DNA from: Thalia democratica
Lineage: Eukaryota
Assembly (NCBI GenBank): GCA_965202585.1
Contig: OZ241826.1
Location: 23,250,001-23,314,000, forward strand
Length of the DNA: 64,000 nt
Direction of reading: 5' to 3'
Positions 18,701-63,341 of the stretch are shown here, piece by piece. Position numbers and translations under genes: made by a program. The notes under the pieces are model-generated. The model had not been told where the DNA came from. It was given only the letters and a program-made list of their open reading frames with translations, and ran no database searches. Each line of letters opens with the position of its first letter. Within the stretch, counting starts at the first letter, position 1.

Positions 18701-21700
18701 GGTATCCAGGGCATGATCGGTTGCCAGGGACCCGAGCAGGTCAGCATGCCCTGCAACGAGGACCCTTGCCCGTACTTCGCGCCATGGCAACCGTGGGGAG
18801 CCTGCTCGCTGTCGTGCGGTGGAGGCACCAGGTCACGTGGCAGGAACTGCATCAACGGCATGGTCGGAATGCTCGGATGCATTGGAGAAGAGATGGAAAT
18901 GGAAGCTTGCAACACTGAGGTATGGATTCAATTATATTTTAAACAGCTTTCAATTATAAGTATGTATAAGTGCTGAAAACTCAAAGTTCACTTTTTATGT
19001 AAATATGTTCGACGTTCTACCAGATCTAGACCTTAAACATAGATAATACATTAAAAATGAACAAACTTATTTGAAAAATAAAATAACGACTGACTTTAAA
19101 GCAGCTAAAAGGTATTAAAAAAGTTTTTAACAAATATTACCTTAAAGGCCTGCCCAATGTGGTCGATGTGGAGCGAATGGGACGAGTGCCCTGTCAGGTG
19201 CAATGGAGGCCAACAACGCAGAACGAGGTCCTGCATGAACGGTCACCCAGGAGAGCAGGGATGCGACGTGGGCAGCAGCACCGAAGTGAGGGCATGCGCC
19301 ACCGAGGAGTGCGAGTACTGGGAGTTCTGGAGCACGTGGTCGGCGTGCAGCGAGACTTGCGGCAGGGGACAGAGGACCAGGTCGAGGTCTTGCGTCAACG
19401 GAATGCCCGGAGACATCAACTGCCAGGGAGGCACCTTGGACGTCGAACCGTGTCAAGAAGGAGTTAGTTTATTGTTATGTTCTGTTAAATGGTGTTTAAA
19501 CATTTCTTTCAAGATTAAAGATGTCTTAAAGATTTTAAGAAATCAATCGATGTATTTTAAAATTTAAATTGAAGATTTTGAAAAACAGTTTTAAATGGCA
19601 TGATCACAAAAATCAAGTTAAATAAGTTACGATCATCTCAAATATATATTGGAAACATATTTCTAAAGAAATAAATCAACTTTTAGGACTGCGCTTTCTG
19701 GCAAGACTGGACCGAGTGGGGCGACTGCTCCGCCACCTGCGGCATGGCGCGCCGCGTGCGCATCAGGTCGTGCTACAATGGCATGCCGGGCGACGAGGGA
19801 TGCGAGGGACTGGACTACGGCATGGAGGTGTGCGACTTCAAGCCGTGCCCGGTGTGGTCGGCCTACGCCAACTGGACCGAGTGCTCGGTGTCGTGCGGAC
19901 AGGGAACCCACATGAGGATGAGGGAGTGCCTGAACGGCGTGCCCGGTGACATCGGTTGCGAGGGAGTGGCTGAAGAACAAGCTCTTTGCAACAGCCAAGT
20001 GAGTATTTTGGCTTTTACAGTAAAAAATGACTTAATTTTTTTTTTTTTTTAATTTATTCTCAAAACATTTTCATGGATAGTTTTATTTAAATTTAAACTA
20101 AAAAAGATCTTTTTTAAAATATCTATAAACATTTAAAATGTTTATTTTTTCTTGTACGGTCTAAATACAAGTATCTAACTTTTTTCTTCATTACAGCCAT
20201 GCCCACAATTTTCGAGCTGGTCACCTGAAGGAGAGTGCTCTGACACTTGCGGAGGAGGATTCGCTCTGAAGAAGCGTGTCTGCCTGAACGGAATCGTCGG
20301 AGAGGTCGGATGCCAAGGAGCGCTACAGGATCTCACCACTTGCAACACTCAAGTTTGTATTACATAATTTGTAGAAAAACTTTAAAAACATACTTATACT
20401 TAAAATCAATTATCAAATAAGTTTCTTAAACAAATTAAAGTGTTTATATGCGTCGAATCTTACAAAAAAGCATTTTGAAACTCAAGATATGTTTAACCAT
20501 TTTCAATTACCTTTATCTGAAACGAGTTTGTCCTGAAAGCCACATGTTATTAATTATCCTAAATTTATACATTACTCTTTCATATTTTTAAATACTATTT
20601 CATAAACTCAGGACTGTCCAACCTTCACCAACTGGGGACAATGGTCCGAGTGCAGCGCCACTTGCGGAGATTCGCAGAGAGTGAGGAACAGGAGGTGCTT
20701 GAACGGAAACTCCGGAATGCTCGGATGCGTCGGAGAGACGCAAGAAATGGAAGCTTGCGCCTCAAGAGTGAGTTGCTTGTTTTTATTATTATTATTATTA
20801 AGTTTATTGTCCAACGAAGGACCTAGGCATTAAAACCTAAGCCACTTAAACTGAAAGACACTAACATAAAAAGAAAAAACAAATTCCGATTCCGTTTAAT
20901 TACAATAAAGTTGGTTAAAATTGTACCAAAAAGCTACTTGTGTTTTTTTGTAATGACTTTATGTTAAACTGAAGTTGGAATTTTTGAATAGAGTTTGTTA
21001 TATAGTTATTATAACTTTAACTAAAAGTTAGTTAAAGTAAACCATTAAAAACATTTTTGTGTTTTGAACTTTAAGTTTTTATTAAGAAACTTAAATCATT
21101 TCAGCTAATGACTAAACATGATACCAATGAACAGTACTTTTATAAATAAATTATCACAGGAATGTCCAGTCTACTCAACATGGACGGCATGGGGCAGCTG
21201 CAGTGCAACTTGCGGAGAAGGAGTCATGATCAGGTCCAGGAGGTGCACAGACTTCAACGGTTGCGAGTCACTCGGATCCGCCACTGAAGAAAAACCATGC
21301 GCTGTCGGAGTTAGTTTGACTTGATAAATATTAGCTAATAAAAACAGCTTTAATTATATAGTTAAAGATTAAAACGCTACAGTCTAAAACGATCGCATAT
21401 TTGCACAATAATTTGAAAAATAACTTACATTTTTTTTAAATACTTAAATAATTGAACAAGATAGTTCAAATGTTACGTCATAACTGTTTAATTAAAATAA
21501 AGCTCAAAATAAAATGCGTTGGCTTTCCTAAAACTAGCAAACTAAAATTCAAGCAAATCTTAATAACTAAACCTCAAATTTACCAAAACAGAACTGCCCG
21601 TACTTCTCGCAATGGGCCGACTGGTCGTCTTGCACGGTCACTTGCGGCGGGGGAACCCAGAACAGGAACCGCAGGTGCGTCAACGGCAACGTCAACGAGA

Positions 21701-42449: not shown

Positions 42450-45400
42450 TCACTTTTTAGTTTGTATAAGTCTTAACTTTATTTATATAATTTTCATCTT
42501 TCAAGTAAACTCACAAATTAGTTTATTTTTCTGCATCATACCCCCTTGACTCTCGTGTTTTTCATCGAGCTATATCATATAGAAAACCCTGGAATCATCT
42601 TTATATACTAGCAATATTCTTTACTTGTATACAGGCAGGGTTGCCTGTATTTTTGTTTTCATCTGATTTTCACAAGCACATACTTTTTTGATACTTTTCT
42701 TGATTTATCAGCCTTCTGACACTTTCAACAATTATGTATGATATATAGACCACATTATAAATACAAGTACTAAAACTTTTATCCAAATGATATCAGAAAT
42801 TACCTTTAAGTTATACGAAAAAAAGGACTGAAACACTCTGCTTTAATCTGCCATAGTATCAGTAAATAGATCTTTAAAGCCTTGTTTCGAGTTTGTTTCA
42901 AGGGTTTGATTCATCAATGCGTAGCGTGGATGCTACTAACACTACTGAATGCAACTTAATTTCATTTTTCAGGATTTTTACTCTAATATGTATATTTTTT
43001 CAGCTGTTCCATTGTTATTGGAAAGCACATTCCTCATCATTCAAATTTTTGTTTCAAACAATTTTGTAATGCAAATAAATGTTTTTCAACTTTAATAACA
43101 ATACTTATAAGAAGTGTCAAACGTTTGGTTTATGACTATTTAATTCAAACTTGAAACACAACCTCCTCACATGTATGACATAAATTTTATTTTTACTTGA
43201 TTCATATACCCATAACTGCTGACATGTATGTTTGTAATCAATAGATAACATACAGGATTTTTGAGATATACTTTCTGAATGTTTTATATACAATGCAAAC
43301 ATAAAAGGCAGGTCCATTAGGAAATCCACGCTCACAAAACCCTTAGTTACCCATTAGTTTTGCATAAGCTTTTTAAGTGTGGAAACAAACTAATTTTAAT
43401 CCTGAAGAACATAATTAAAAAAATATATTAAGACGTTTAGAAACCAAAAACTTTTCATTGCGAGTTAAATAATTTAAAGCATACTAAAGTAGCCAAGGCT
43501 TAAGTTCGTCGTGAAATCTAATTAAAACTTGGTGAAATGAACCCGGTTTAAATTATCGGTAACAAGCTGGTTTAGTACACAAGGTCTTACTAACTTTCAA
43601 CTGCTTACCTAGTTCAACATCATTTCTTGCTTTTTTTTTAATAACAAAATTTCATTGGATTCTGTTCATAATAAACAAAAAACCCATCATGTTCAAAGGA
43701 ATTTACATACAAAATAACCTGTGTTATTTGAAATCTGTCATACTAATTGATTTCAACTTATTTTACAAAAAATGTATTGTAAGCCAAAACACTTGAAATA
43801 CAGTTTAAAAAGTCAACTAACATTATACTCCTGTAATGCTCTACTTAAAATTGTTTAAGGAAGTTCTTACTTTCTAATGACATCAGCATTTTTAAATTTT
43901 TTAAAATGTCATCAGCAGCTAAAACTCTTATAGGTTTAAAAAATCAAACTAAATTTATTAATTAAATTTAATTGGGTTCTGTTTATAATAAACAAACAAC
44001 CCATCGTATTGAAAGAAATTTACATATAAACTAACTTGCGTTGTCTTGTTGTTTTTATAGTACTACTTGAATAAAACTTGTTTTACAAGAATTGTACTAT
44101 AAGCTAAAACAATTGAAATACACTTTAGAAAGTCAACTAACATTATACTCCTGTAGTGCTCTACTTAAAATCGTTTTTAGGAAACTCTTACCTACAAGCT
44201 AATATTCTAATGACATCAGCATTTAATTTTTTTTTTAAATTTCATCAGCAGCTAAAACTCATATAGGTTTAGAAAATCAACTGACGTATACTCTTAGCGT
44301 GCTCCACCGTAAAATGTTATTTAGATGTAACGAAATAAACATTTCATTTTATAATTTTTTGTGTGTAAATAAATATGTAATTTTTGTAACAACAAAACCA
44401 ATGATAAGCTTTCTCAAATCATTTTTTTCCTAAAACAACATTATTTTGTTTAGTTATAATATATCTTCGTGCTTTTGTAGTTTATGTAAATAAAAGATTA
44501 GTTTTTATTAGTTCTGTATATTAATATATATATTTCTATTCCCTTTTACCCCTTAAGTATTTCTCTTTTCGAGATATAGGGTATTTTTTGGTTTGGGACT
44601 TTTGTATAAATTTGTTTTGAAAATTTTATTTATTTGACCTTTTGTAAAATTTATTCAGCTTTGCTTGATCTTCAAGTTTGTACAATATAGTGTTTTTTTC
44701 AACCATCGAAACCTTTTACAAAATGGAGACACTGTTTCTCAGATGTTTTTTATAAAAAAAAACTAATAACCTTAACTTATTGAGAAATAATTAATTTAAT
44801 TAATAGTTTTTTTTTATTTAATGTTGTTAGCTTATTAACAAAAATACATTTAACGTATCCTTATGATAATCTTCTTTTAGTATAATATCAAATGTTAACT
44901 AGATTTTAAGTTGTCTTTCGACAACTTGCATTATTGTTTCTTTTATTCTTTTTATCGGAAACAAAAATTTTTATTTATCATTCTTGTAGTTGTTCACGTG
45001 ACGTTGTTCTTCAGCAAATTCTTAATTTCAATAGATCTTTTAGTATGTATAGGCCATTTAGTTTATATCCTCTCACTGTAAAGCTGGCTGTTGTAAAAAT
45101 TAAGTATAGCTGGTTATTTTTAATTTCTGTATATATACTTTTTAAATTTATTTATACAAACTTACTTTTTTTCTTCAAAAGTTTAATATATTTTAAATAA
45201 TTAAGATACCTCTTATTTAAGACCACTCCTCTTCAGAACATTAATACACAGCTGCAGAGGCGAACCCACACCATTTCAGAAATTCAAGATTTAGGGTAGA
45301 TTAGGCTTCTTGTATAAACTGAAGTGTGATGTTATATTTTTATTAGTACAATCATAAAGGCTATATAGATCATAAATAATTGTCAAATAAAATAAAGCTA

Positions 45401-47499: not shown

Positions 47500-47600
47500 A
47501 AGCCATATTGGATTTGTGTTTAACTGTTGCTCTCGAGCTTTTAGTTCTTCATTAGAAAGTATTTGTAGTTACAGGTAAAGTCGATACGTGGTTATCAATG
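47500..47600 (-). pseudogene. Additional fragment of the KMT5A-like SET exon
   Basis: With one frameshift it reads DFTCNY / QILSNEELKAREQQLN, paralogous to DLICIY...QMFFNKELKAREKELN in copy A. Confidence 0.55.
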
Positions 47601-48418
47601 TTATAAATGTTTTAAAGTTTTAGCCAAGGGTGAAACTTTAGTTTAGAACTACGGGTTCGCCCGTACAACAAAACTCTTCATATTCGCTAATATCCCTACT
47701 CGCTGTGAAGTAAGGGTGAGAGCTCTGTAGTGCAAGGATACTTTTCAGTATCCAAGCCAGTTTCACTTGGCAGTTTGGTGCTACTATTATTGATGATCCT
47801 TCCAAGCTGCCATCTTACAGCGTGGCGTCTAAACCGATCCAGTTACATTTACATAGAGGGTAGACCAGATAAGTTTGCTCTGATTCATCAGGATTCAGTT
47901 CTTTCTCGCGAGCTTTTAGCTCTTTATTAAAAAACATTTGGTGATCGTAAATACAGATTAAGTCGCCACATGGTATATCATCATTTTCGTTAAAGCTACG
48001 TATTAAATTAAATTTTCCATAATTCCTATCGCAAGTTAAATCGTGTAATTTTCTCATTGTTTTTGTGTTTATAGCAAAAATTTTGTTTGTAAAAAACAAT
48101 AAACTCTCATATTTATAAGTGCCGTAGCTTTTGCTTGTTTAATACAACGCATAATAGTATAGTTTGTTTTTAGTTTATCTTTTTAACATTCATATATAAG
48201 ATGATGTAATGTTTATCGGCACAGAAATGGCGTAGAGTTAAAAGTTTTAAAGACATTTATTTTTATTATTTATTCTACCATAAAACTTCTGATTCCATGC
48301 AAATTATTTTTAAATTCACATGTTTGTGTCTGATTTCCTATTAACAAATGCTTAGTTATCGTTTTCAAATAAATAAGATATTTTTTTTTTACATTAAAGT
48401 TTATTGCAAACAAAATAC

Positions 48419-48457
48419 AAAATAGAAGTACTTTTCGGACACGCTCTTCAGTATTTT
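48419..48457 (-). ncRNA. Minimal type I hammerhead ribozyme in the Penelope 3' terminus
   Basis: The - strand reads AAAAUA-CUGAAGA-G-cguguc-C-GAAA-aguacu-UC-UAUUUU: complete core, 6-bp stem I, 1-bp stem II and palindromic loop III. Confidence 0.8.
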
Positions 48458-50135
48458 TTCGTGTCAAAACAAGCTGAAATAATGATTTACTGATAAAAAC
48501 TAATAAAACTAAGTATTTAAGAAAACAAATTAAATTTAACACAATAGTAATAATTAACAAATTAAGGCAATCGTTTAATCAGAAATAATATAAATGTAAC
48601 ACAACTTTACTAATCAACTAATTTAAGTTCAACGAATTAAACAAAATGGTCGAATAAACAAATTTCTTTTGTTTACAGAGATCTGGCTTTAAGCTTAAAA
48701 TGTATATAGCTTCTAAAGTTTTTAGGTGAAATTCATTACGAGCAACTGATATTATTTTGAAGTTATCCACTTTATAGTTTTCGACACACTTAGGACTAGT
48801 AATCAGGTGTTGGCCAATCGCTGAACTACTATTTAGTTTTTTCAAATCATCAAATTTCTTTTCCTCGTTACATGACTTTATCTTGTTTAAAAGGTTTTTT
48901 GGTATGTGTTGGTTAATTCTTGAAATCAAATTGTTACTCGTTCTACCCACGTATGTTTTTTACATAAACATACAAATTTATAAATTACATTGCTGGTGTT
49001 TAGGGTGGGTAATTTATCTTTGTTTTTAATCTGAAACAGTTTATTGGTTGAGTATACTATTCGTAAATTAACAGATCTATAGCCATTTTCTACTATTTTC
49101 TTCAAATTATTATGCAAAACTGTATTCTGATTGAATGGCAACTTAAGGTATACCGGACACTTTTTTGGACCAAATTTTATTGACTCAAACCTTGTCTTTG
49201 TTTTTTGTATTGTGTTCTTTATTATGTCTAGAGGGTAACCTAAAGTCGCAAAGATTCTTTCCACATTTGATAATTCTGTTTCTAAATATTTTTTAGAAGA
49301 AATTTTCATTGCTCTATATGTAAGGCAACTGATTAGATTTAGTTTTTGTCTCATTGGACTGTATGAGTTATAAGGGACATAGTCCCCACTGAAGGTACTT
49401 TTTCTAAAAATGTTCGTATAGAACATTTGATTCTCCCTATTGACCATAACATCTAAGAATGCTAAATTGTTTTCAGTTGCTGTTTCCATAGTAAATTCGA
49501 GGTTTGCATGCATGCTATTCAGTTTTAATAGAAATTCATCTCTGTCTTTATCGTCTGTAAAGATGGCAAACGTGTCATCTACATAACGTTTGTAATAAAT
49601 GGGAGAAATATCTTTTATGAGTTGTTGTTCATGGAAACCAACAAAAATGTTTGAGAGAATAGGACCAAGTGGCGACCCCATTGATATACCGTCAATTTGC
49701 TTATACATATGATTATTAAAGCTAAATTCTACTCCACAACATGCTAATATTAATAATTCTTTGAAGACTTCTGGTTTTAGGTATTTTGGAGCTAATCTGT
49801 ATTTAAATAGTTCATTCACAACTAAATTAATGCTCTCCTTAATCGGTAAGCTGGTAAAAAGAGACTTGATATCGAAGGAACACATACTAATGTTTTCCTG
49901 ACTGATTTTTAACTGTCTAATATCATCAGCAAAACTGAATGAGTCTTTAATACAATAGATCGAGTATACTGATTCTAATGGTTTCAACATTTCTACACAC
50001 CATTTAGCAATCTTATGTTGCGGTGAATTAATCATTGAAAGGACTGGTCTCAGAGGTACTTTTGCTTTGTGTGTTTTTGGCAACCCATACAGTCTGGCTT
50101 CACGTGTCAAACCATTCAGCTTGTTTTGACACGAA

Positions 50136-50174
50136 AAAATACTGAAGAGCGTGTCCGAAAAGTACTTCTATTTT
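50136..50174 (+). ncRNA. Minimal type I hammerhead ribozyme in the inverted terminal copy
   Basis: aaaata ctgaaga g cgtgtc c gaaa agtact tc tatttt; predicted cleavage 3' of C50168. Confidence 0.8.
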
Positions 50175-51784
50175 GTATTTTGTTTGCAATAAACTTTAAT
50201 GTAAAAAAAAAAAATGTGATTTTTATAATGGAAAAACCATTATTTCAACAAATAAGATATTGTTTTATATTGTTTATGGTACAAATACTTTCCTACACTA
50301 CTTAGCAAGTTGTATTTTTATGTAAACTAGCTAAATTATTTTTGTATTTACACAATTTTAACAATTTTTTTTAGTAATTTTTCCAAACTTAGGTTCAACC
50401 CAAACCTTTCCCACGAACCCTACATTTAAATATTTATTTTAGGTTTGAAAAAATATTTAAAGAAAAATACTTTTTAGATAGTTAGGTCTGAATAGGTCAG
50501 AATTCTTTCTAAATAGTTGTCACCATAACAATAGAAAATTTTGTCGCTACCATTAGCTTATGTACGTACTGATCTTATTAACGCTTTTTTAAGGCCATTA
50601 GATATTCTATTAAAAGATTTCATTATCGTGTAAAGTACAATTTTTATCTAATTGATTAAAAGTATAAAACGATTTTTCACAAAAAAACAATGAACATTTT
50701 TATCTTTATGTTGAACGGAATGATTAAGAAGTCGGTCTTTTGTTTTAATCTTTTTCTATAATAAGTTGTACAGTCATGTATTTTGGTAGTGCTGTGAGTT
50801 GTTCTATGATTATTTAGATGTTGCTTGGTCTTTAAACTTTCTTGTAATCCAGGCATTTGAAAGGTTTTTTTTTATTCGAGTGTTTGATTAACTGTGACTT
50901 GTAACAAAATTCTTTGAAGGAACACATCACAGATGCACCTTTCTTTGGCGCTGTTTGAAGAAATGTCAAATACTAAAATTACAAACTTATTTTTCTATAG
51001 ATTTTCCTTCAATTTTAGCTCTTTAATTAATGTAAATTAAAACAAAGTAGTAGCTGAATTTACAATGTTTGTATATCTCTCGCTACATCGCATGCAATAA
51101 AACTTTATTTCTAAATTTATACCTGTACTCTACAATTCCACTCTAGTTCATGGCGTATGAAAAATAAGGGAAAGAATACCACAAACTATGTATATATTTG
51201 TAAGAAAGTATTGTTAGAAAAATAAAGCCTCCTTTTTAACCGGTTTGTTTGTAAGTGACAGTTAAAGACTTCTTCATCTTTGAACAAGAATTTATCCATT
51301 TTCTTAACTCCTTTTTTTCTGCGAAAGACATAACATGGAAATTCACTTTAAGAAAGTTAATAAAATCCCTTAAAGTTTTATCAAAATATCTACCAACCAA
51401 TTTTTTATTGTTTTTACATTAAAGGCACTTCATAAGTCAGCATTTAATGACCATTGAAAAATTAAAGCAGCTATTTACAAACTTAAACCTAATATTTACA
51501 TAAGTTACTAAATTCTGTTGTTAAAACTATATGTTGTTTTCTAAACCCATCTTTTTTGTTAAAAAGTTTTTCTTGATTTTTATCACTAAATGTATTCTTT
51601 TTATTTAAAACTTTTTAACCCAACATGTTGTTTTTTTTTTATTCCTGTGAATAGTAGATGATTAAATGGTTGGTCTTCATAGAAAAAGTGTTTTTTACAA
51701 ACTGTAAAATTTACAAGACTTTTTTTAAGAGCTTTTAACATTTTTGTAGTTTGTAAAACTTGTCTTGGCTTCTAACCTTTGCTT

Positions 51785-52360
51785 TTAATTGATTGGAAGT
51801 CTAAAACGATTTTATTATTATTATTAAAGTTTATTGTCAAACGAAGGACCTAGGCACTAAAACCTAAGCCACTTAAACTGAAAGACACTAGCATAACAAG
51901 AAAAAAAAATTACAGTGATTAAATAAACATAAACATTAAACTTATACAAGGCACAAACCGAATAAACTAAAACTTTCATAACTAAAATATTCAACGGTTC
52001 CAAAGTCACTAATCTCTACAAAATTTGCCACAAAAAAATAAAGAAAATTTTATCTTTATGTTGAACGGAATGGTTGATCTTTTGTTTTAAATTTTTTCTG
52101 TAAGATGTACAGTCATGTATTTTGACAGTACTGTGAGTTGTTCTGTGATTATTCAAATATTGCCTGGTCTTTAAACTTTCTTGCAACCAAGGCATTTGAA
52201 AGGTTTTTTTCGAGTGTTTGGCTAACAGTGACTTCTAACAGAATTCTTTGAAGCACCACATCACAGATGCACCCTTTCTTTGGCGTTGTTTGAAGAAATG
52301 TCTAATACTAAAGATACAAACTTATTTTTCTATAGATTTTTTCTTCAATTTTAGCTTTTT
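51785..52360 (-). pseudogene. Third copy of the zinc-finger exon (copy C), interrupted by a LINE/SINE tail
   Basis: Acceptor at 52307; KPFKCLGCKK...KTRQYLNNHRTTHS at ~52130-52206; aligns with 50650-51020 and 53640-54020. Confidence 0.75.
51813..52022 (-). mobile_element. 210-bp CR1/L2-like 3' fragment with (TAA)n tail inserted into the zinc-finger exon
   Basis: Absent from the paralogous exons; 4-bp duplication attt at 51809-51812 and 52023-52026; stem-loop plus (TAA)n tail; same family as 20784-20879. Confidence 0.7.
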
Positions 52361-52388
52361 AATTTCACTTTAGGGTTTATCTAAGATA

Positions 52389-52545
52389 ACTTACAACAGA
52401 ACGAAACCATATTGATAATTAGACCATTTTCATTTTCGACGACATATGTACTAATGACATTAGACCTCGGTAGGAAGTAATGCATGAATTCTTCTTTAGT
52501 GAAAACGGGTGAGAGCTTGAAATGCTTGAGGTAGTCGTACAACAA
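52389..52545 (-). pseudogene. NMT: Exon fragment of glycylpeptide N-myristoyltransferase (NMT), with its splice donor
   Basis: Reads LLYDYLKHFKLSPVFTKEEFMHYFLPRSNVISTYVVENENGLIINMVSFC and ends at a GTAAGT donor (52394-52389). This resembles the NMT C-domain segment LLxxYLxxFxLxPVxxxEExxHWFxPxxxxIxTxVVENxxGxxxDxxSFY, recalled from memory rather than searched. Confidence 0.8.
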
Positions 52546-54205
52546 AACTCTTCATGTTCGCTAATATCCCTACACGCTGTGAAGTAAGCAGAAGAGCTCT
52601 GCAGTGCAAGGATACTTTTTCGGATCAAAGCCAGTTTCATTTAGCAGTTTGGTTCTAATATTGTTGATGTTCTTCCCAAATTGACATCTTCTATCATGTA
52701 AATCAATACAGGCACCTTTACACTGAATGTAGACCAGATAAGTTTCCTATAATTTTTCAGGATTCTTTCTTTCTCTCGAGGTTTTAACTCTTCATTAGTA
52801 AACATTTGGCCATTGTAAATACAGATTAAGTCGCCCCATAGTATATCAGTAGTTGCTTTAAAGCTATGTGAAAAATTAAATTTTTCATAATTCCTATCTC
52901 AAGTTAAATCGTGGACTTTTCTTATTTTCTTGTGATTGGAGCTAAAAAATTTTTTGCAAAAAACAATAAACTCTCATTTTTTAAGTGCCATACTCAAGCT
53001 TGTTCAATAGAACACATTATAGTATGCTTTTTTCAAAGTTTATTTTTTTAACATTTATTTAACAATTTAAGATGATGTGTTATCATCTCAATAATGTTTA
53101 TATGCACTGAAATGTCGTGGAGTTTAAAAATTTTAAAGACATTTATTTTTAATAATTTTTATAAAATTTCTGATTCCACGTGATTCTTTACTAAATTCAC
53201 ATGTTTGTGTCTGATTTCCTAATGATGTTTTAGTTATCGTTTTTGGTTAAACATAAAATTGTTTATGGTACAAATACTTTCCTACACTATTAAGCAAATT
53301 GTATTTTTATGTAAACTAGCTAAACTATTTTTGTATTTACAATTTTTTTTTATTAATCTTTCCAAAACCTCATTTGATTAGGAGCAGGTTCAACCCAAAC
53401 TTTTCCCACAAACCTAATATTTAAAAAGTTTTTCTTTAGGTTCAAAAAGATTTTTCAACAAAAATACCTGCAAGCTAGCTAGGTCTGAATAGGTCAGAAT
53501 ATTTCCGGAATAGTTGTCACCCTAACAATAGAAAACTTTGTCGCTACATTCAGCTCATGCACATACTGATCTTATTAACTCTTTTTTAAGGCTATTAGAT
53601 ATCTTATTTAAAAACTTTCATTATCATTTAAGTTATTATGTTTATTTAGTTGAAAAGTATAAAACGATTTGTCTTAAAAAGAACAATGAATATTTTTATC
53701 TTAATGTTGATCGGAATGATTAAGAAGTTGATCTTTTGTTTTAATTTAATTTTATATAAGATGTACAGTCATGTATTTTGGTAGTGCTGTGAGTTGTTCT
53801 GTGATTATTCAAATGTTTCCTGGTCATTTAAATTTCTTGCAATCCATTTGAAAGGTTTTTTTATTCGAGTTTTTGGCTAACAGTGACTTGTAACAAAATT
53901 CTTTAAAACACACATCATAAATGCACCCTTTCTTCAAAACTGTATGACGAAATGTCTAACACTAAAGGTACAAACTTAATTTTTCTTATAGATTTTATCT
54001 TCAATTTTAGCTTTTTAATTTATGTAAATTTAAACAAAGTAATGGCTGAATTTACAATACTTGTATTTCTCTCATTATATCGCATGCAGTAATTTTTTTT
54101 TGTAAATTTATTGCTGTAATCTACAATTTTACTTTAGTTCATAGTGTATGATCAATAAGGAAAAAAATTACCTGTTTGGATCATTTGGTGATGAAGTGTA
54201 TTTAC
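52537..54205 (-). pseudogene. C2H2 zinc-finger + KMT5A-like SET gene, copy B (disrupted; SET 3' end replaced by the NMT fragment)
   Basis: SET region ~52537-52960 (FKATTDILWGDLICIYNGQMFTNEELKPREKE...YFTACRDISEHEE). Clean 54-nt exon 53468-53521 (GDNYSGNILTYSDLASLQ). Zinc-finger exon 53567-53961. Small upstream exon ~54172-54204. Colinear with copy A. Confidence 0.72.
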
Positions 54206-55399
54206 TAGATACTTTTTTTTAAAATCGGCTATTCTAACGTTTTACTCACCTTTCTTCTTTTAATCATGATTTTAATATGTCTAGTATCGTTCTATAGTTA
54301 ATGTCCGATTTTTAGATTTTTTTTGTAGTGTTCGTTATTAATTGACACTCCACTACTGTGAACTAGTTTATCAATGTCCTCGTGTGCTCCTTATTTGTTG
54401 GACATTGTAACAGTGCCTGACCTATTATAAGTGGATCTAATTCAGTATAAAACGAAGTATCTATTTACGTACATATCTATTATATCTTCTAAAGGCCAGT
54501 TGTAGTTCGTCGGAGTTCTTTTATTGCTGTTTTTTAAGTTATTATCATCGTTAAAATCAATTAACCCTATAGGGAACTTGAATTTTATTTTTCCCTCTCA
54601 TTTTCGCAACAATTAAACAAAATTTCAGGCGCGCTATTAGTCATCTTGGTACGTTGCAGGACGACGCCCGCGCATTCTCTTAACTTTAAGCTGATATTGA
54701 GTTAGTTAAATATGATTTGCTGTCGTTATACTTGAATTAAATCTAAATGAACTGTTTGATGATTTTAATTTGCACGTTCGGAAAGTTTTTGCTATAATTC
54801 CAGTTAGTTAGAAAATAGTTACTTTCGCTATATTAAAGTTTGGTTTTAAATGAATTATTTTTTAATACAGTTTGCGTGTTCATGCAAAAGATGTTTAATT
54901 TTTGGTTTAGCATAACGGTCTATTTTTGTACTTGTTAACAAGGTTATAAGAAGCTATGAGGATTTGTGCAGACACATGACTGAACCTTAAACGAAATATA
55001 AATGAGATTAATACACAAAGAGGAAAGTACAGCACTTACAGCTAATCTCTAACAAACAGTTTACTCTAGAATGAAATGCTATGTTAATGTACATAAATTT
55101 AGATATTTTTTAAAGCAGTCATAAATTTGCAACCCTAAAGAAGGAGCCTCAGGGCTTTAACAAATTCCAAAGTGTCTCGCGTGAAATTCACTGCAAAAGA
55201 TTTGCCGCTTTCTATTGTTTCCACAATTCTCTCAACAATGGTGTAGACGTCATTAATTAATGGTAAATTTTCAGTAAAACTATCCTGAGTTCCAATCACA
55301 AGATCTGAAGATCTTAAAGCTTCAAATTTCTGTGAATTGTCTGGGACTCTTTCTAATTCCTTTTTTTTTCTCACAAATCTGCTCGATGGCAGAGCGTTC

Positions 55400-55900
55400 T
55401 TAACAAATTTGTTTTTCTCTTTATCATAAATTAAAGTTTAAAAAGTTCTCAGTAAAAGTTTTCTTGCTATAAACAGCTGTCAAAAATAAGTTCTTGTGTC
55501 TTTTCTAAAACGTCAATAAAAGCCAATTCCTGGTAATTTTTCTTTTCTGATGTAAATGTTTTTGACGAATGTGTTTTGTTCAACACATTAAAAAATTCAT
55601 CAATCTCTTCCTTATCTTTTCCTAACACAAAACAAGCGTCGACATATCTATAATAAGTCACTTTGTACTAAGAGATCCACTTTCTTTCTATAAAGCCCAT
55701 GAATACATTTGACAAAGTCGGGCCTAATGGGAGCCCATGATTATTCCATCCTGTTGGGAATACATTTGTGTTTTTTTCGTAAATTGTACACTACTAGTTG
55801 ATAACTTTAAAGTTTACGAAAATTATTTTTACTTGTACTGGGTGTCTCAAGTCACGTATCAAGTTGTTAATTACCCTTTGCTTTATTAGTATTACTTTTA
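55400..55900 (-). mobile_element. Penelope-like RT fragment (degenerate)
   Basis: YSQQDGIIMGSPLGPTLSNVFMG and YYRYVDACFV...F..E...LAFIDV (ORF 55467-55661). Confidence 0.8.
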
Positions 55901-57309
55901 CGTTGATTACATTTTCACTATATAGTCTAGATTTGAAATTTATTTATTTGCTTAGATTTATTGCTTAGTTTACAACTGATGAAATAAGCATGAAATACAT
56001 ATTGTTTTGAAGTTTGAGTCTTATGTATACTTTTAAAGAATTTATTAAAGTGTCAAATGTTCTTATCATCCTTAAAGTCAATTATCCACATAGGGAAGTT
56101 TAATCAAAGATTCCAAAAAAAAAAGTTATACTCTTCTTCCAAAAAAAACAAAAGTTCACGGTTCGGCGCGATCACGTTGTTACTCGATTGTTAAAAGATT
56201 CAAATTTAAGTATTGGTCTTAACGGGTCAGCTGATGAACTACAAATGAGCCAAATGTCGGGTTTTTAATGTTTCTTCTACTTTTAATTCAATTTCTTCAG
56301 CAGCTTTCCATGATACTTACACAGGTAAGTATTCTTTTGATCAAGGTTGCGGCGCGTCTACAAAAAACAAATGGAAGTTTAAATATTTTTTTTCTTTTTA
56401 TCCTCCTTAAATATGTGCATTTTACTATTAACTTTGTAATAATTTAATTTAACGTGAAACTAAGTATCTACGTACACATTTATTATATCTTCTAAAGGTC
56501 AGGTGTAATTTGTCTCAATGCCGCTGTAGTTAGTTATTTTCATCCTTTAAATCAATTTTCCACACAGAAAATTAAATTCAACTTTGCCAAACTCTTCCTC
56601 CAAAACAAAAAATGTTTCATGCTTTAGCGCGATCATGCTGTTACTTGGCTGTTTACAAATAGGCAAGATGACGCCCGCGCATTTTCGTAACTTTAAGATG
56701 AAGTTTCAGTTAGTTTAGAAAGAGTTACTTTCGTTGTATTTGAAACTTATTTTTAGTAAAAAAAATTTAAATATAGTTTTGCATGTTCGTGCAAAAGATA
56801 AAAGAAATTTAATTAAGCACAACGATATAATTTAAAACTTTTTGTTAGCAAGGTCATAGATTTTTGGCTCGGATTTGTTTTAAACGCGCAAATAATCATA
56901 AGGTGTTTACCTGACATGTGAATTAACAGATTCAAAGCCTATAACTATATTTACTTGCTTAAATTTATTTCTGCAAGCATTTAGTTTCTTAAAGAGATAC
57001 ATATTTATTAATATTATTTGAATACTGCCTTAGTTCTTAAAATATGTAAAGTAAGTCTAAAAACTTAGTTTTAAACTAAACTTTTTATAATTTTTTAATG
57101 AATAAATGAACACTCAACTTTTTTCTTTCCAATATTATATATTTCGTTAAGTTCTTTTTAGGGAAATTACAATTGAAAAAATACAATAAAACACAACAAG
57201 TATATATATATACAAAAATTTTTGCAAGTTAATTAACTAAACAAATAAGTAAATGTAATCAACAAAAATGTAAACATCAAGAACTTTAAAAATCAACACC
57301 AAATGGTCT

Positions 57310-57830
57310 TAACTAAATAAGGCTAAAGTGTAGTCAAATTATTTCTTTTTACATAAACTTGGTTTGTTTAAATGTATTAAAATGGCTTCAAGTCTAATTA
57401 ATGCCAATGTATTTGAACATTGTCGCATTACACTGAAATTAGACAATGCAAACTTTTTTCCACAACTTAGATTATTCACAAGGTGTTCTGCTATCCCGGA
57501 TTTTTTTATTGCATTTTTGACTGCAACACTCTTTTCGTCTTTTTTGTCTTTAATATACGAAGTGATACACTTAGGAACATGTTTCTTTATTCTAGTAGTA
57601 AGGTGTCGAGAAGTTTGACCAATGTAGTTACTGTCACAGCAACATTTAAACTTGTAAACTACAAGACTTTTTTTCTTCTGGTCTCATTAGGTCTTTTACC
57701 GAACGTTGAAGTATTGGTTTGGACATGAAGAGAACCCTATGATTCACCGCATGATATGTTTTACTTGTAATATTCACTATTTTTTTCTCAATTAATTTCG
57801 ATTCAGCGCCAATATATGGAAGTTTCATTA
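57310..57830 (-). mobile_element. Penelope-like GIY-YIG 3' fragment
   Basis: KLPYIG...; VYKFKCCCDSNYIGQTSRHL..RI..H; IAEHL; RLEAILI..NKPSLC. Confidence 0.85.
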
Positions 57831-58229
57831 TTATTATTCAGAATTTGACGAAATATATTGGAAAGAAAAATTTGAGTGTTTATTTATTCATTAAAAAATT
57901 ATAAACTATAGTCTGTCGTTTAAATAACTAAAAACTTTTTATTATTTTTCATTTTCTACTTCTTACCTAGATGTTAAAATAAATGTTTATGTTGAGCAAC
58001 TTTCCACTATACTTACACAGGAAACTGTTATATTTGAGCCAAAATGTATAAAAAATCACGTCCTGTAAAACAAAAAATAAAAACATTTTATTTTGATCTT
58101 TATTATTGTTGCTTTATTAAATATATAAGTGATATATCGTTTCTTTATAATCAGACATCTAATTGAATTTTTAATTTTGTAGGTTTTAGATGAGTATTTT
58201 TATTTTGATACTATGTGGTAAACATCTCA

Positions 58230-58440
58230 CGTTTACCTAGAAATTTTTGAAGAAATTCTGTCCACAAATGTAAATTTTTAGACTGCTGTGAGTTGTGCTG
58301 TGATTACTTAAATGTTGCCTGGTCTTAAAACCTTCCTTTAAAATCTTTTAAAAGGTTTTTCACTCGTGTGGGTTCTTGTGGGGGTAGTCAGAAGTGAATT
58401 GTAAGCAAACATAGCAAGTGAAGTCTTAATGTACTTTTTA
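58230..58440 (-). pseudogene. C2H2 zinc-finger fragment of the same family
   Basis: RTHTSEKPFK...GFKTRQHLSNHSTTHSS, containing a canonical TGEKP-type linker. Confidence 0.65.
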
Positions 58441-58789
58441 AAGATGTATACAACTGTCATGTGTCAACTACTATTATACAAACTTTATATACTTTAGTAC
58501 AATATTATTGTTTATCGAACGAATGAATGCTTTTCCAATCTTCTAAAAATATAACATTTGGTATACAAATATTAAAAAGTATAAAACAGTCTAAATTTTT
58601 TGTGATAGTTTGATAGTATTTCTCTTTTTTTCATGAGAAACTAACAGTAGAACAAAACATAAACTTATGAGTATTTTTTTTAATAACAACCAAAAAAGTT
58701 CAAGCTAATTAAGTAATTAGTACAATAAATAACCAGTATAAATTAATTTTAATAATAATCAGTTAAACTAATATACTGCTAACAAAAAC

Positions 58790-60290
58790 AAAATAAATAA
58801 TTTAAGTATATAAAAACACTATGTAATCAAATCCCTTTTGTTTGCATAATTCTGGTTTCTATAAAAATATATAGGTAGCCTCCAACGAGATCAAATACAC
58901 AATTAAAATGATAAATTTTTTTAAATCTAAATGTTTTATATCTCCTTGAACAATCTCTATTGTTTATTAAATGTTCTGCTACTGAAAATATTTTAGCTGC
59001 GTTTTTGGTTGCCGCTGTCTTTATCAATAAATTTCAACACGCTAAATGTTCCTTTATCCTTTAAAAAGAAAGTAAATGTTCCTTTACTCTAGTTTTGAAA
59101 TGCCTCGAAAATTGACCGATATGGCTTCTTCTGCAAAAGCAATTAAAATTGTATATTAAACAACTTGTGTTTTGGTCTGGTATCTGATCCTTGAACTGCA
59201 CTTTTAATAAAGGTTTTTGAGAGAAATATGTTCTTGAACTACCTTTATTGTAAGATGTTTTTATTAATTCTTTTACTTTATTCTCAAATACACCTGATGT
59301 TTTTTCAATATATGGTAGTTTCAAAACTGCTGGGAATTACTCCAGTCCAGACATCTTAAGTTTATTTAGGTTATTGTACTTTATATAACCCTCCTTATCA
59401 AATATGTTGGACATCCATTTTTATTAAAATCTGTTTTATTCTCTCCACCTCTAAATGAAGTGGTTCTTTAGAACAAATCGTGTAGGCTTTATGACATAGT
59501 TTTTTATTTTGTTTACTTTTTGTTTCTTACTACAAAATTATTTATAGTTTAAGTACTGCCCAGTGAAAGTTGTTTTCCTATAGACACTCGTTAGAAAGTT
59601 TGTTTTAACCATGTCATTAATATATCTAAAAATGGCATTCGGTTGTTCTATTTCACTTCTCTAATAAAAGAAATCTTTTAATGTAAAGAATTAAACTTTT
59701 GAAATATAGCTATGTTTTCACTTTTTGTTTAAGAATCGTCAACTTATCCAATGTAGACAGCCTGTGACGACAGATCTTCAACAATTTTGGATTAAAGATA
59801 TCCGATAAAAATATTAGCAAGTCTTGGGCCCAACGGTAATCCCATAGCCACGCTGTCTATCTGACTTTAAAATTTAATTATTAAAACTAAACTGTACATC
59901 GCTTATTGCCATTTTCATTAGCTTAATAAAACTATTTTTCTCTAAGTTTGGTTTTACGATTTTATATAGTTTATCAACACTTACCTTTATTGATTCTTTT
60001 AATAGTACACTGGTGAATATTTGGTCTACATCAAAAAAATATTAATTTATATTAGTTGATCTAGCGCTTCAGATCACTTTCAATAACCTCAAAAGAGTCC
60101 TTAACAGCAAACAGTGAGTATTAAGTTAAAACCGACTCTTTTAAAAAATTCAGAAATCTGGCTAGTTTGTGCTGTGGTTACTTAATCATCGACAAAAAAG
60201 CTCTGAATAAAAATTTATTCTTTAGGCAGTTTTGGAAGACCGTATATCCTCGGCTTAATCGAACCAATTAGTTTATTAGCCATAAAAACA
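58790..60290 (-). mobile_element. Degenerate Penelope-like element (RT + GIY-YIG)
   Basis: PRIYGLPK (~60240), QIDSVAMGLPLGP (~59840), KLPYI...IYNFNCFC..SHIGQ.SRH...RVKEH (59061-59324), and VAEHL. Confidence 0.85.
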
Positions 60291-60490
60291 GATTATAAGA
60301 TCTCATTTTTTAATTATCATCTAAGTTATTATGTTTATCTAATTGATTGGAAGTATATAACGATTTGTTTAAAAAAGAACAATGATAATTCGTACCTTGA
60401 TGTTGAACGGAATGATTAAAAAGTTGGTATTTTTTTTATTAATTTTTCTATAAACTGTACAGTTATGTATTTTTTCAGTGCTGTGAGTCA
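60290..60490 (-). pseudogene. Partial fifth copy of the zinc-finger exon
   Basis: Aligns with 53620-53790 (gttgaacggaatgattaa, tgtacagttatgtatttt, gtgctgtgagt). Confidence 0.65.
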
Positions 60491-60981
60491 TTCTCTTTTT
60501 TTTAATTTCCCTGTTTTACTGTAACCATATATTTAACATGACCACATATTTAACCTGACTGATTTTAAATCTGCAAAAAAACAGGTAGTACGAAGTGAAG
60601 GTAATGAAATTTAAAAATTTTTTATTACTCAGCAAAAGAAAAAAAAAATCTGATTAAAAGTTTGGCTTAGAACCTTGCTGAAAGAAACGACCAATCGTAC
60701 AGCTTCCCAAAATAACAAACAATGTTTCGTGCTTCAGCGCGCTATTACTCATGTCAATGCGGTGCGGCATGACGCTCGCTTTTTAACATTAAAACCAGTT
60801 AGTTATAAATTATTTGCTGTCGTTGTACTTGAATTTAAACCTATATGAATTGATTACCAAATATAGTTAAGCGTTTTAAATCTAAGAATTTTTTTTTATT
60901 TTAATAACAGTTTAATTTTCATATTTTTTGTTAACTACTTCATAGACTTTTGTCAAAAGTTTGTTGCTCCCTGTGCCTCTT

Positions 60982-63341
60982 ACAATTTAAATATTTATTG
61001 TGTATTGAGATAGAGACCCTCTAATTTCCCATCAAGCAAATATATATTTCTTTCTTACCACTGTGTTGTTGTTCGTTGAACAGATCTACATCTACCCTGC
61101 GCCTCAAACAACTCAAATATTTTTTGTGCATTGAGAGAGACCCTTTATTTTCCCATCCAGCACATATATTTCTCTCTTCCTCCGTTTTGTTGTTTGTTGA
61201 ACAGATCTACATCTACCCTGCGCCTCAAACAACTTAAATATTTTTTGTGCATTTAGAGAGAGACCCTCGAACTTCCCATCAAGCACATATATTTCTCTTT
61301 CCTCCGTGTTGTTGTTTGTTAAACAGATCTACATCTACCCTGCGCCTCAAACAACTCAAATATTTTTTGTGCATTGAGATAGACCCTTTATTTTCCTATC
61401 CAGCACATATATTTCTCTTTCCTCCGTTTTGTTGTTTGTTGAACAGATCTACATCTACCCTGCGTTTCTAACCACTCAAATATTTTTTTGCATTGAGAGA
61501 GACCATTTATTTTCCTATCCAGCACATATATTTCTCTCTTCCCTCCGTGTTGTTGTTTGTTGAACAGATCTACATCTACCCTGCGCCTCAAACAACTTAA
61601 ATATTTTTTGTGCATTTAGAGAGAGACCCTCGAACTTCCCATCAAGCACATATATTTCTCTTTCCTCCGTGTTGTTGTTTGTTAAACAGATCTACATCTA
61701 CCCTGCGCCTCAAACAACTCAAATATTTTTTGTGCATTGAGATAGACCCTTTATTTTCCTATCCAGCACATATATTTCTCTTTCCTCCGTTTTGTTGTTT
61801 GTTGAACAGATCTACATCTACCCTGCGTTTCTAACCACTCAAATATTTTTTTGCATTGAGAGAGACCATTTATTTTCCTATCCAGCACATATATTTCTCT
61901 CTTCCCTCCGTGTTGTTGTTTGTTAAACAGATCTACATCTACCCTGCGTTTCTAACCACTTAAATATTTTTTGTGCATTTAGAGAGAGACCCTCTAATTT
62001 CCCATACAGCACATATATTTCTCTCTTCCTCCGTGTTGTTGTTTGTTAAACAGATCATCTACCCTGCGCCTCAAACAACTCAAATATTTTTTGTGCATTG
62101 AGAGAGACCCTTTATTTTCCCATCAAGCACATATATTTCTCTCTTCCCACCGTGTTGTTGTTTGTTAAACAGATCTACATATACTCTGCGCCTCAAACAA
62201 CTCAAATATTTTTGTGCATTTAGAGAGAGACCCTCTAATTTCCCATACAGCACATATATTTCTCTCTTCCTCCGTGTTGTTGTTTGTTAAACAGATCATC
62301 TATCCTGCGCCTCAAACAACTCAAATATTTTTTGTGCATTGAGAGAGACCCTTTATTTTCCTATCCAGCACATATATTTCTTTCTTCCCTCCGTGTTGTT
62401 GTTTGTTGAACAGATCTACTTCTACCTTGCGCCTCAAACAACTTAAATGTTTTTTTCGCATTTAGAGAGAGACCCTCTAATTTCCCATCAAGCATATATA
62501 TCTCTCTTCCCACCGTGTTGTTGTTTGTTGAACAGATCTACATCTACCTTGCGCCTCAAACAACTCAAATATTTTTTGTGCATTGAGAGAGACCCTTTAT
62601 TTTCCTATCCAGCACATATATTTCTCTCTTCCTCCGTTTTGTTGTTTGTTGAACAGATCTACTTCTACCCTGCGCCTCAAACAACTCAAATATTTTTTTG
62701 CATTGAGAGAGACCATTTATTTTCCTATCCAGCACATATATTTCTCTTTCCTCCGTTTTGTTGTTTGTTGAACAGATCTACATCTACCTTGCGCCTCAAA
62801 CAACTTAAATGTTTTTTTCGCATTTAGAGAGAGACCCTCTAATTTCCCATCAAGCATATATATCTCTCTTCCCACCGTGTTGTTGTTTGTTGAACAGATC
62901 TACATCTACCTTGCGCCTCAAACAACTCAAATATTTTTTGTGCATTGAGAGAGACCCTTTATTTTCCTATCCAGCACATATATTTCTCTCTTCCTCCGTT
63001 TTGTTGTTTGTTGAACAGATCTACATCTACCCTGCGCCTCAAACAACTTAAATATTTTTTGTGCATTTAGAGAGAGACCCTCGAACTTCCCATCAAGCAC
63101 ATATATTTCTCTTTCCTCCGTGTTGTTGTTTGTTAAACAGATCTACATCTACCCTGCGCCTCAAACAACTCAAATATTTTTTGTGCATTGAGATAGACCC
63201 TTTATTTTCCTATCCAGCACATATATTTCTCTCTTCCTCCGTGTTGTTGTTTGTTGAACAAGTCTACATATACTCTGCGCCTCAAACAACTTAAATATTT
63301 TATGTGCATTGAGAGAGACCCTTTATTTTCCTATCCAGCAC
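60982..63341. repeat. ~121-bp tandem minisatellite, ~19 units
   Basis: Unit approximately tgtgcattgagagagaccctttattttcctatccagcacatatatttctctcttcctccgt(g/t)ttgttgtttgttgaacagatctacatctaccctgcgcctcaaacaactcaaatattttt. The identical short ORFs in the ORF track recur at 362-363 bp spacing. Confidence 0.97.

Follow-up and report, generated by a model that had tools for sequence, protein, structure and literature searches.

The question raised by this locus in Thalia democratica is whether segments resembling C2H2 zinc fingers, which lie 5' of segments resembling the SET domain of the H4K20 mono-methyltransferase KMT5A (PR-Set7, SET8), belong to a gene family in which both parts are joined in one protein. 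A preliminary description of the window (the whole stretch of DNA analysed, 64,000 nucleotides in length) had proposed such a family, expanded in tandem by birth and death, and had reported two colinear minus-strand copies, additional finger copies and an additional SET fragment, every copy being broken. The layout was confirmed by self-BLAST and tblastn, and stops and frameshifts were found in every finger and SET copy. The two colinear copies, units A and B, are on the minus strand, span ~1.6 kb and are composed of a finger segment, a spacer of ~690 bp and a SET segment. By self-BLAST they are 79-81% identical, unit B being contiguous (52536-54168) and unit A consisting of 47662-48365 and 50269-51177 with a 1.9-kb insertion in between. 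Beyond these units, there are three partial finger copies (ZF-C, ZF-D and ZF-E) and one short second SET fragment (SET2), and all copies are direct DNA repeats on a single strand, clustered in one array:

47512-47565, minus strand: beginning of another, older SET copy (SET2), found by tblastn ~50 nt past the SET-A stop
47612-48370, minus strand: lower half of unit A, with the remaining spacer and SET-A
48057-48055 (ATG) to 47614-47612 (TAA), minus strand: SET-A, whose domain starts with an ATG of its own
48371-50275, minus strand: Penelope-like retroelement in the unit A spacer (RVT_1, E 3e-11)
50276-51177, minus strand: upper half of unit A, comprising the upstream part, ZF-A (at about 50610-50940) and the beginning of the spacer
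51786-51813, minus strand: ZF-C continuation, finger 4 region, beyond a repeat insertion of ~210 bp
51814-52022, unstranded: short, very high-copy interspersed repeat inside ZF-C (depth 7e4-1e5)
52023-52365, minus strand: ZF-C, fingers 1-3, 85% identical to ZF-A, acceptor AG lost
52393-52545, minus strand: N-myristoyltransferase (NMT_C) exon fragment (Pfam NMT_C, E 5.3e-15)
52540-52950, minus strand: SET-B, remnant of a KMT5A-derived SET domain, which has indels of its own in addition to the shared frameshifts
52951-53639, minus strand: non-coding spacer between ZF-B and SET-B, 83.8% identical to the unit A spacer
53625-53965, minus strand: ZF-B, the four C2H2 fingers of unit B in decayed form, TAA after finger 4
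53966-54168, minus strand: upstream part of unit B, common with unit A (50980-51177)
58284-58360, minus strand: ZF-D, finger 2/3 fragment of 77 nt (80% over 77-80 nt, E 8e-15)
60309-60494, minus strand: ZF-E, fingers 3-4 (79-81% identity)

A finger copy previously placed at 51785 is accounted for by ZF-C, which resumes at 51786-51813 past the repeat insertion. The upstream part of unit B may contain an ATG mini-exon, together with a short stretch that resembles an intron and ends in ACAG.

The lesions of the individual copies are numerous. SET-A has an in-frame TAA (47817-47815) and frameshifts near 47803, 47780 and 47672, and the translation quoted in the preliminary description (YFTASRDISEYEE, then LLY...FHPWLKL and the stop) is indeed present in this copy, with a frameshift in between. 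SET-B is interrupted by a TGA after DLT and a TAA after PNC, and in finger 4 of ZF-B the second Cys is replaced by a TAA stop. SET2 is truncated in the window and continues in a metagenome contig (L001), which carries two SET copies of its own, SET1 and SET2. The catalytic NHS is altered to NNS in SET-A and L001 SET1 and to NNI in SET-B, and is kept only in L001 SET2, while LLYDYG is shortened to LLYG in SET-A.

Several of these lesions are common to the copies. The N(N/H)(S/I) codons are separated from (P/Q)NC by 4 nt in SET-A, SET-B, L001 SET1 and L001 SET2, EE and LLY are separated by an additional T in SET-A, SET-B and L001 SET1, and finger 2 has a Cys-to-His spacing of 35 nt, instead of 36, in ZF-A, ZF-B, ZF-C and ZF-D. 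As the same frameshifts recur across copies, the unit was already dead at the time of its duplication, and no working gene took part in any of the duplications observed. Identity between units A and B is 83.5% for the upstream part, 86.7% for the fingers, 83.8% for the spacer and 82.0% for the SET segment, so that the 'exons' and the spacer are equally diverged (82-87%), and the differences per codon position amount to 26/27/23; divergence after duplication was neutral. Neither a sign of selection on the fingers nor an intact member was found among the copies. The locus has the marks of a duplicated pseudogene array, namely disabling lesions common to the copies and coding parts that have diverged as much as the non-coding ones, and birth and death of functional genes does not account for copies that inherited the same frameshifts and then diverged neutrally. 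Most probably, a cassette that had already lost its function was copied at the DNA level, by segmental or tandem duplication, to give the small array seen in this region.

Some of the shifts fall in homopolymer runs (an A-run in finger 2 and a T-run before LLY), as would be expected if the genes were intact and the breaks reflected errors in the assembly, programmed frameshifting or an alternative genetic code. However, these explanations were rejected because the lesions are common to diverged paralogs, which are just 65-82% identical, and to an independent short-read metagenome contig. In addition, the SET copies contain both TAA and TGA and copy A has a TAG past the finger stop, substitutions are spread evenly across codon positions, and the neighbouring TSP1/VWA exons and the Penelope-like reverse transcriptase (RT) are open in the standard code, so that intactness of the genes has a negligible probability.

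The assignment of the SET segment to the KMT5A/PR-Set7 type, made in the preliminary description, was borne out. When stop-free SET pieces were linked by X into a 77-aa reading, which covers the C-terminal half, only KMT5A/SETD8 chains were matched in the PDB (12 best, E 2e-5 to 9e-4), the next SET protein following at E 1.3, and the KMT5A alignment runs to the last residues of the chain, HPWLK. In Pfam, the X-joined reading reached SET at E 0.016, which is below the cut-off, single stop-free pieces (94, 55, 58 and 21 aa) gave no match in either PDB or Pfam, and in the ESM Atlas a SET-like feature set was recognised and no useful relative was obtained. The alignment with the KMT5A chains passes through LGR(L/I)IN(H/N)S, NCQ.KL, ASRDI, EELLY and the terminal HPWLK. 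Judged from the sequence, the segment is derived from KMT5A/PR-Set7, the match being one of ancestry only. Unlike KMT5A, the locus has the SET domain alone, without the N-terminal region, and the copies are pseudogenes rather than an enzyme gene, as stops and two to three frameshifts per SET copy leave no intact KMT5A-like open reading frame. With respect to a possible origin of the SET segment by retrocopying, the domain of ~135 aa has no intron in these copies, and no poly-A or target-site duplication was seen after the SET stop, past which SET2 starts within ~50 nt.

The finger segments contain four fingers of CX2CX12HX3H spacing once frameshifts are allowed for. Pfam returned only a weak zf-H2C2_2 match (E 0.047) for the X-joined consensus reading and none for finger copy A alone; the C2H2 assignment, drawn from the spacing, is accordingly a tentative one.

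Whether the fingers and the SET domain were ever parts of one gene can be judged from the sequence between them. The copies could be what is left of a fused gene that was functional in the past, in which N-terminal C2H2 fingers were spliced to a C-terminal KMT5A-type SET domain, giving a sequence-targeted H4K20 methyltransferase of which an intact member may survive elsewhere. Consistent with this, a pyrimidine-rich, acceptor-like AG directly precedes the SET domain in unit B, and order, strand and spacing of fingers and SET are alike in units A and B, as would also fit a former single gene. However, the finger frame stops at a TAA or TAG immediately past finger 4 in copies A and B (a TAG comes after the stop in copy A, and in copy E a TAA lies already within the short tail), and no donor-like GT precedes the finger stop in copies A, B or E. 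The AG of SET-B is not conserved in unit A, where an ATG opens the SET frame, and neither a continuous frame nor a conserved donor/acceptor pair links the finger exon to the SET exon. The single finger-to-SET gene put forward in the preliminary description is not supported by these features, and the frameshifts common to the copies, with no observed duplication of a working gene, also argue against a fused ancestor.

The search for relatives points in the same direction, as no intact one was found among 1.84 billion representative proteins. With the 94-aa SET piece, HMMER returned one 50-aa fragment, which comes from a metagenome contig and is itself broken, and one spurious repeat protein. 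A word-index protein search with a 107-aa piece gave no match, two metagenome scans (by protein patterns and by a conserved 22-mer) gave no relatives, and literature searches yielded no description of a finger + KMT5A architecture or of a KMT5A expansion of such kind. The sequencing runs in which the locus occurs are either of an unlabelled kind, with most of the window present at genome-like depth, or marine metagenomes, none shown to be RNA. We consider a formerly functional fused gene improbable, and more improbable still that the cassette stems from a lineage-specific fused gene, with C2H2 fingers aiming a KMT5A-type SET domain at DNA sequences, of which an intact, expressed member survives in another part of the genome or in a relative. 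As in the PRDM family (e.g., PRDM9), C2H2 fingers are found at the same locus as a SET-type domain; in PRDM proteins, however, the PR/SET domain precedes the fingers, whereas here the fingers lie 5' of SET, which matches KMT5A rather than PR, and there is no frame or splice link and all copies are decayed.

The summed depth of the cassette is 130-380, compared to 72-90 for single-locus contigs, which suggests a few copies per genome, at about 2-5 times single-locus depth. A large expansion of the KRAB-ZNF kind, as the preliminary description had envisaged, is not supported by this depth; finger-encoding segments are locally repeated as in tandem KRAB-ZNF-type clusters, but the copies are few and the ancestor of all was already broken.

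The array has also been modified by foreign sequence. The end of SET-B is replaced by the NMT_C fragment, which has an open frame of 50 aa and terminates at a GTAAGT donor, the junction lying inside LLYDY, a stretch common to both. The insertion in unit A qualifies by its sequence as a Penelope-like element, as it combines RT and GIY-YIG parts with high copy number (depth 3e3-4e4). It resembles known Penelope-like elements in its 5'-truncated RT open reading frame (48929-50167), a weak GIY-YIG remnant (48621-48959; E 6e-4 to 8e-4, just under the cut-off), 108-nt flanking inverted repeats and very high copy number. Since the element is absent from unit B and from another contig, an empty site with the joint 48370>50250, it entered unit A later and is a bystander interrupting the cassette rather than a part of it. 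No hammerhead ribozyme or other Rfam family was found at threshold in 44-64 kb.

These insertions bear on the possibility that the finger + SET unit is the cargo of a mobile element (Helitron-like, Pack-type or Penelope-associated) that picked up gene fragments and dispersed them. In favor of such cargo are the mosaic make-up from three unrelated genes (ZNF, KMT5A and NMT), the related copy in a metagenome contig, and the Penelope-like remnants within unit A and beside ZF-E, which is directly adjoined by an RT remnant (about 60000-60250). However, copy number led to the rejection of a mobile element as the main explanation, as there are few copies per genome compared to the depth of the Penelope-like element and of the short repeat. 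In addition, the unit is not bounded by terminal repeats or target-site duplications, the Penelope-like element postdates unit A, and the copies are grouped in one array, hence we regard cargo as very unlikely.

For the preferred reading, an array of duplicates from a cassette already dead, a course of events can be proposed. The first part of the cassette would be what remains of a small C2H2 zinc-finger gene, with four fingers in an apparent last coding exon followed by a stop, and the second, ~690 bp downstream and not joined to it, an intronless segment of KMT5A/PR-Set7 origin comprising only the SET domain, so that the two parts would come from separate genes. The SET segment would have gained a frameshift, undergone head-to-tail duplication into SET1 and SET2, and acquired a second frameshift in SET1, before the whole finger + spacer + SET unit was duplicated several times, presumably by unequal or template-switching recombination. 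The copies were further broken, probably after these duplications, by insertion of the Penelope-like element in unit A and of the short high-copy repeat in ZF-C, by exchange of the end of SET-B for the N-myristoyltransferase exon fragment at the LLYDY stretch, and by deletions and neutral point mutations.

In nothing essential does the locus differ from known arrays of duplicated (non-processed) pseudogenes or segmental-duplication patchworks, with which it has in common DNA-level duplication that includes a non-coding spacer, inherited lesions, neutral decay, later transposon insertions and junctions between unrelated genes, whereas its content (ZNF remnant, KMT5A SET remnant and NMT exon piece) is lineage-specific. 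It is an ordinary pseudogene patchwork and provides no evidence for a new DNA-targeted histone methyltransferase. The significance is small beyond annotation, where the copies are best masked or annotated as fragments of pseudogenes, lest gene predictors report a spurious finger-SET protein, and the locus would gain interest only with the discovery of an intact fused gene elsewhere. It is nevertheless a tidy small example of dead gene pieces that were duplicated and recombined in AT-rich, transposon-rich DNA. The array adjoins a satellite, and the high-copy repeat that interrupts ZF-C, the loose ends of which are poly-A-like, has a second copy at 20781-20885.

The array of finger and SET copies probably arose by segmental duplication of a cassette that was already dead. 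In this cassette the remnant of a zinc-finger gene is followed ~690 bp downstream by a KMT5A-derived SET remnant; inserted transposons and a join to an N-myristoyltransferase (NMT) exon fragment broke the copies further. Self-comparison of the window reveals two colinear direct copies on the minus strand, units A and B, with the fingers 5' of the SET segment, as the preliminary description had proposed. In minus-strand order, each unit comprises ~200 bp upstream of the fingers that both units share, a segment of ~330 bp with four C2H2-like fingers, a non-coding spacer of ~690 bp and a SET segment of ~410 bp. The three extra finger copies (placed at 51785, 58230 and 60290) and the extra SET fragment (47500) of that description were recovered as ZF-C, ZF-D, ZF-E and a short piece at 47512-47565, the coordinate 51785 arising because ZF-C resumes at 51786-51813 past a repeat insertion. 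Unit C has neither spacer nor SET.

Features of the array and its surroundings (window coordinates)
~7300-33000, plus strand: TSP1/VWA multi-exon gene (one exon matches Pfam TSP_1 at E 2e-37; VWA E 8e-19)
47512-47565: second SET fragment, short
47662-48365 and 50269-51177, minus strand: unit A, split within the spacer (self-comparison)
48371-50275, minus strand: Penelope-like element in the unit A spacer, 1.9 kb (RVT_1 E 3e-11; weak GIY-YIG, E 8e-4)
51814-52022: short interspersed repeat splitting ZF-C, poly-A-like loose ends at 51888
52023-52365, continuing at 51786-51813: ZF-C, finger copy split by the ~210-bp, very high-copy repeat
52393-52545, minus strand: NMT_C exon fragment, joined to SET-B inside LLYDY
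52536-54168, minus strand: unit B, contiguous (self-comparison)
55138-55667, minus strand: Penelope-like reverse transcriptase (RT) pieces
57342-57837 and 58830-59336, minus strand: Penelope-like GIY-YIG pieces
58284-58360: ZF-D, finger copy
60309-60494: ZF-E, finger copy
60969-63341: satellite of 122-bp units (19.6 copies, 88% identity), directly adjoining the pseudogene array

By sequence comparison, the SET segment descends from KMT5A/PR-Set7, and the earlier assignment to this family holds as far as ancestry is concerned. The stop-free SET pieces on their own match nothing in PDB or Pfam. The C-terminal half of SET-A, the SET remnant of unit A, was read through with an X marking every break. 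The resulting 77 aa match only KMT5A/SETD8 chains (twelve best, E 2e-5 to 9e-4), the next SET protein following at E 1.3; the alignment spans DAT..LGRLINHS, NCQTKL, ASRDI and EELLY and extends to the last residues of the chain, HPWLK. The Pfam SET model gives the X-joined SET-A reading an E of 0.016, short of the cut-off. The segment is intronless and holds the SET domain alone, the SET-A frame opening with an ATG exactly where the domain begins.

In the majority reading of ZF-A, ZF-B and ZF-C after frame corrections, four CX2CX12HX3H units follow one another, separated by short linkers, and these are likely C2H2 zinc fingers: the spacing fits, while the profile match is weak (zf-H2C2_2, E 0.047, for the X-joined consensus reading; ZF-A alone has no Pfam match). 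In A and B the last His of finger 4 is followed by five to six residues and then by a TAA that closes the finger frame (TAATAG in A), and in ZF-E a TAA lies three residues past the position of this His; no donor-like GT precedes the finger stop in A, B or E. In this the segment resembles the last coding exon of a small gene for a zinc-finger protein. Upstream of the fingers, A and B share an ATG, which is followed ~25 nt on by a donor-like site (B only) and ~95 nt further by an ACAG that in B is in phase with finger 1, and the finger part may originally have formed a complete mini-gene of two exons.

Every copy is broken, as had been noted, by stops and frameshifts that are in part shared and in part copy-specific. 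Among 1.84 billion representatives, HMMER with a 94-aa SET piece identified a single true match, a 50-aa ORF (87% identity) from a 752-bp ENA metagenome contig, L001. At 88.6% identity to unit A, this contig shares with it the junction between a first and a second SET copy (SET1 and SET2), and its breaks fall at the same places. The two copies in L001 are SET remnants arranged head to tail (1-392 and 418-752), the second beginning mid-domain; SET2 keeps NHS and SET1 has NNS. Four nucleotides separate the N(N/H)(S/I) from the (P/Q)NC codons in SET-A, SET-B, L001 SET1 and L001 SET2 (AGCA, AGAA, AGAA and AGAT, respectively), hence all four can be aligned to KMT5A only by allowing a frameshift at this one point; L001 SET2 is only 65-72% identical to the other SET copies, yet carries this same frameshift. 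SET-A, SET-B and L001 SET1 have in common a single additional T that separates ...EE from LLY..., and in finger 2 of ZF-A, ZF-B, ZF-C and ZF-D the distance from the second Cys position to the first His is 35 nt, not 36. These three lesions, being shared between copies, argue that the cassette was already dead before it was copied. An additional frameshift between fingers 2 and 3 is probably also shared, blurred by later indels. Private lesions come in addition. SET-A has lost 1 nt from a GGG run, SET-B has its own deletions of 1 and 5 nt together with two stops, and in SET-A and L001 the Glu codon expected to follow DAT(L) is a TAA or TGA. Decay after duplication has been neutral: identity between units A and B is 83.5% in the upstream part, 86.7% over the fingers, 83.8% over the spacer and 82.0% over SET, and the differences along the SET reading path fall on codon positions 1, 2 and 3 in the numbers 26, 27 and 23.

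The preliminary description had proposed a fused, DNA-targeted H4K20 methyltransferase, expanded in tandem like KRAB-ZNF or PRDM9 systems. Nothing in the window supports such a fusion: the frame of the fingers closes ahead of the SET segment, no conserved splice pair links the two, and none of the observed duplications copied a working gene. A fused gene in a remote ancestor or at another locus is quite improbable; in its favour, fingers and SET keep a constant order and spacing. No description of a finger and KMT5A architecture was found in the literature, and neither a word-index protein search nor two metagenome scans yielded a relative. The libraries searched, the 1.84 billion representatives included, gave no self-hit and so seem to lack this genome's own proteins; a blank result there is poor evidence on what other parts of the genome contain. 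The proposed expansion does not agree with copy number either: exact-match contigs of the locus have a word depth of 72-90 in run X1, and the summed depth of the finger and SET segments at 80% likeness is 130-380, which corresponds to a few copies, several of them within the window, and speaks against a large expanding family and against a mobile element. For comparison, the Penelope-like element reaches a depth of 3e3-4e4 and the short repeat a summed depth of 7e4-1e5.

The copies were also targets of later events. The Penelope-like element at 48371-50275 is young; its RT ORF is 5'-truncated with 413 stop-free codons, a GIY-YIG remnant is present, and it is flanked by 108-nt inverted repeats (48371-48478 and 50115-50222, 97% complementary). 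Insertion-free contigs joining 48370 to 50250 occur in the runs of both related organisms, and the insertion in unit A is therefore secondary. A further RT remnant directly follows ZF-E, with the RT start (..RIYGLPK..) at ~60000-60250; no hammerhead ribozyme reaches the Rfam threshold within 44-64 kb. The homology of SET-B to SET-A ends at LLYDY, after which an open 50-aa NMT piece follows (Pfam NMT_C, E 5.3e-15), ending at a preserved GTAAGT donor with ~30 nt of its intron and then ZF-C upstream sequence. This junction is a DNA-level join of unrelated gene fragments within a short stretch common to both proteins.

The array sits between the TSP1/VWA gene and the 122-bp satellite, among many Penelope-like remnants, in AT-rich eukaryotic DNA (GC 0.22-0.33 over 32-64 kb). 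Sequencing runs of one organism cover almost the whole locus, and it is partly covered by runs from a second, related organism and from marine metagenomes; none of the runs located is known to be RNA. The TSP1/VWA gene encodes many thrombospondin type 1 repeats, then VWA domains; several open frames run through its GC-rich exons (0.42-0.46) on both strands, and its introns are AT-rich. A second copy of the short repeat lies in this gene region (20781-20885, 93% identical over 105 nt). In the satellite, higher-order periods of 243 and 363 bp score better than 122 bp, and the AT-rich intergenic sequence at 43637-44280 contains a local direct duplication of ~320 bp with 79.5% identity.
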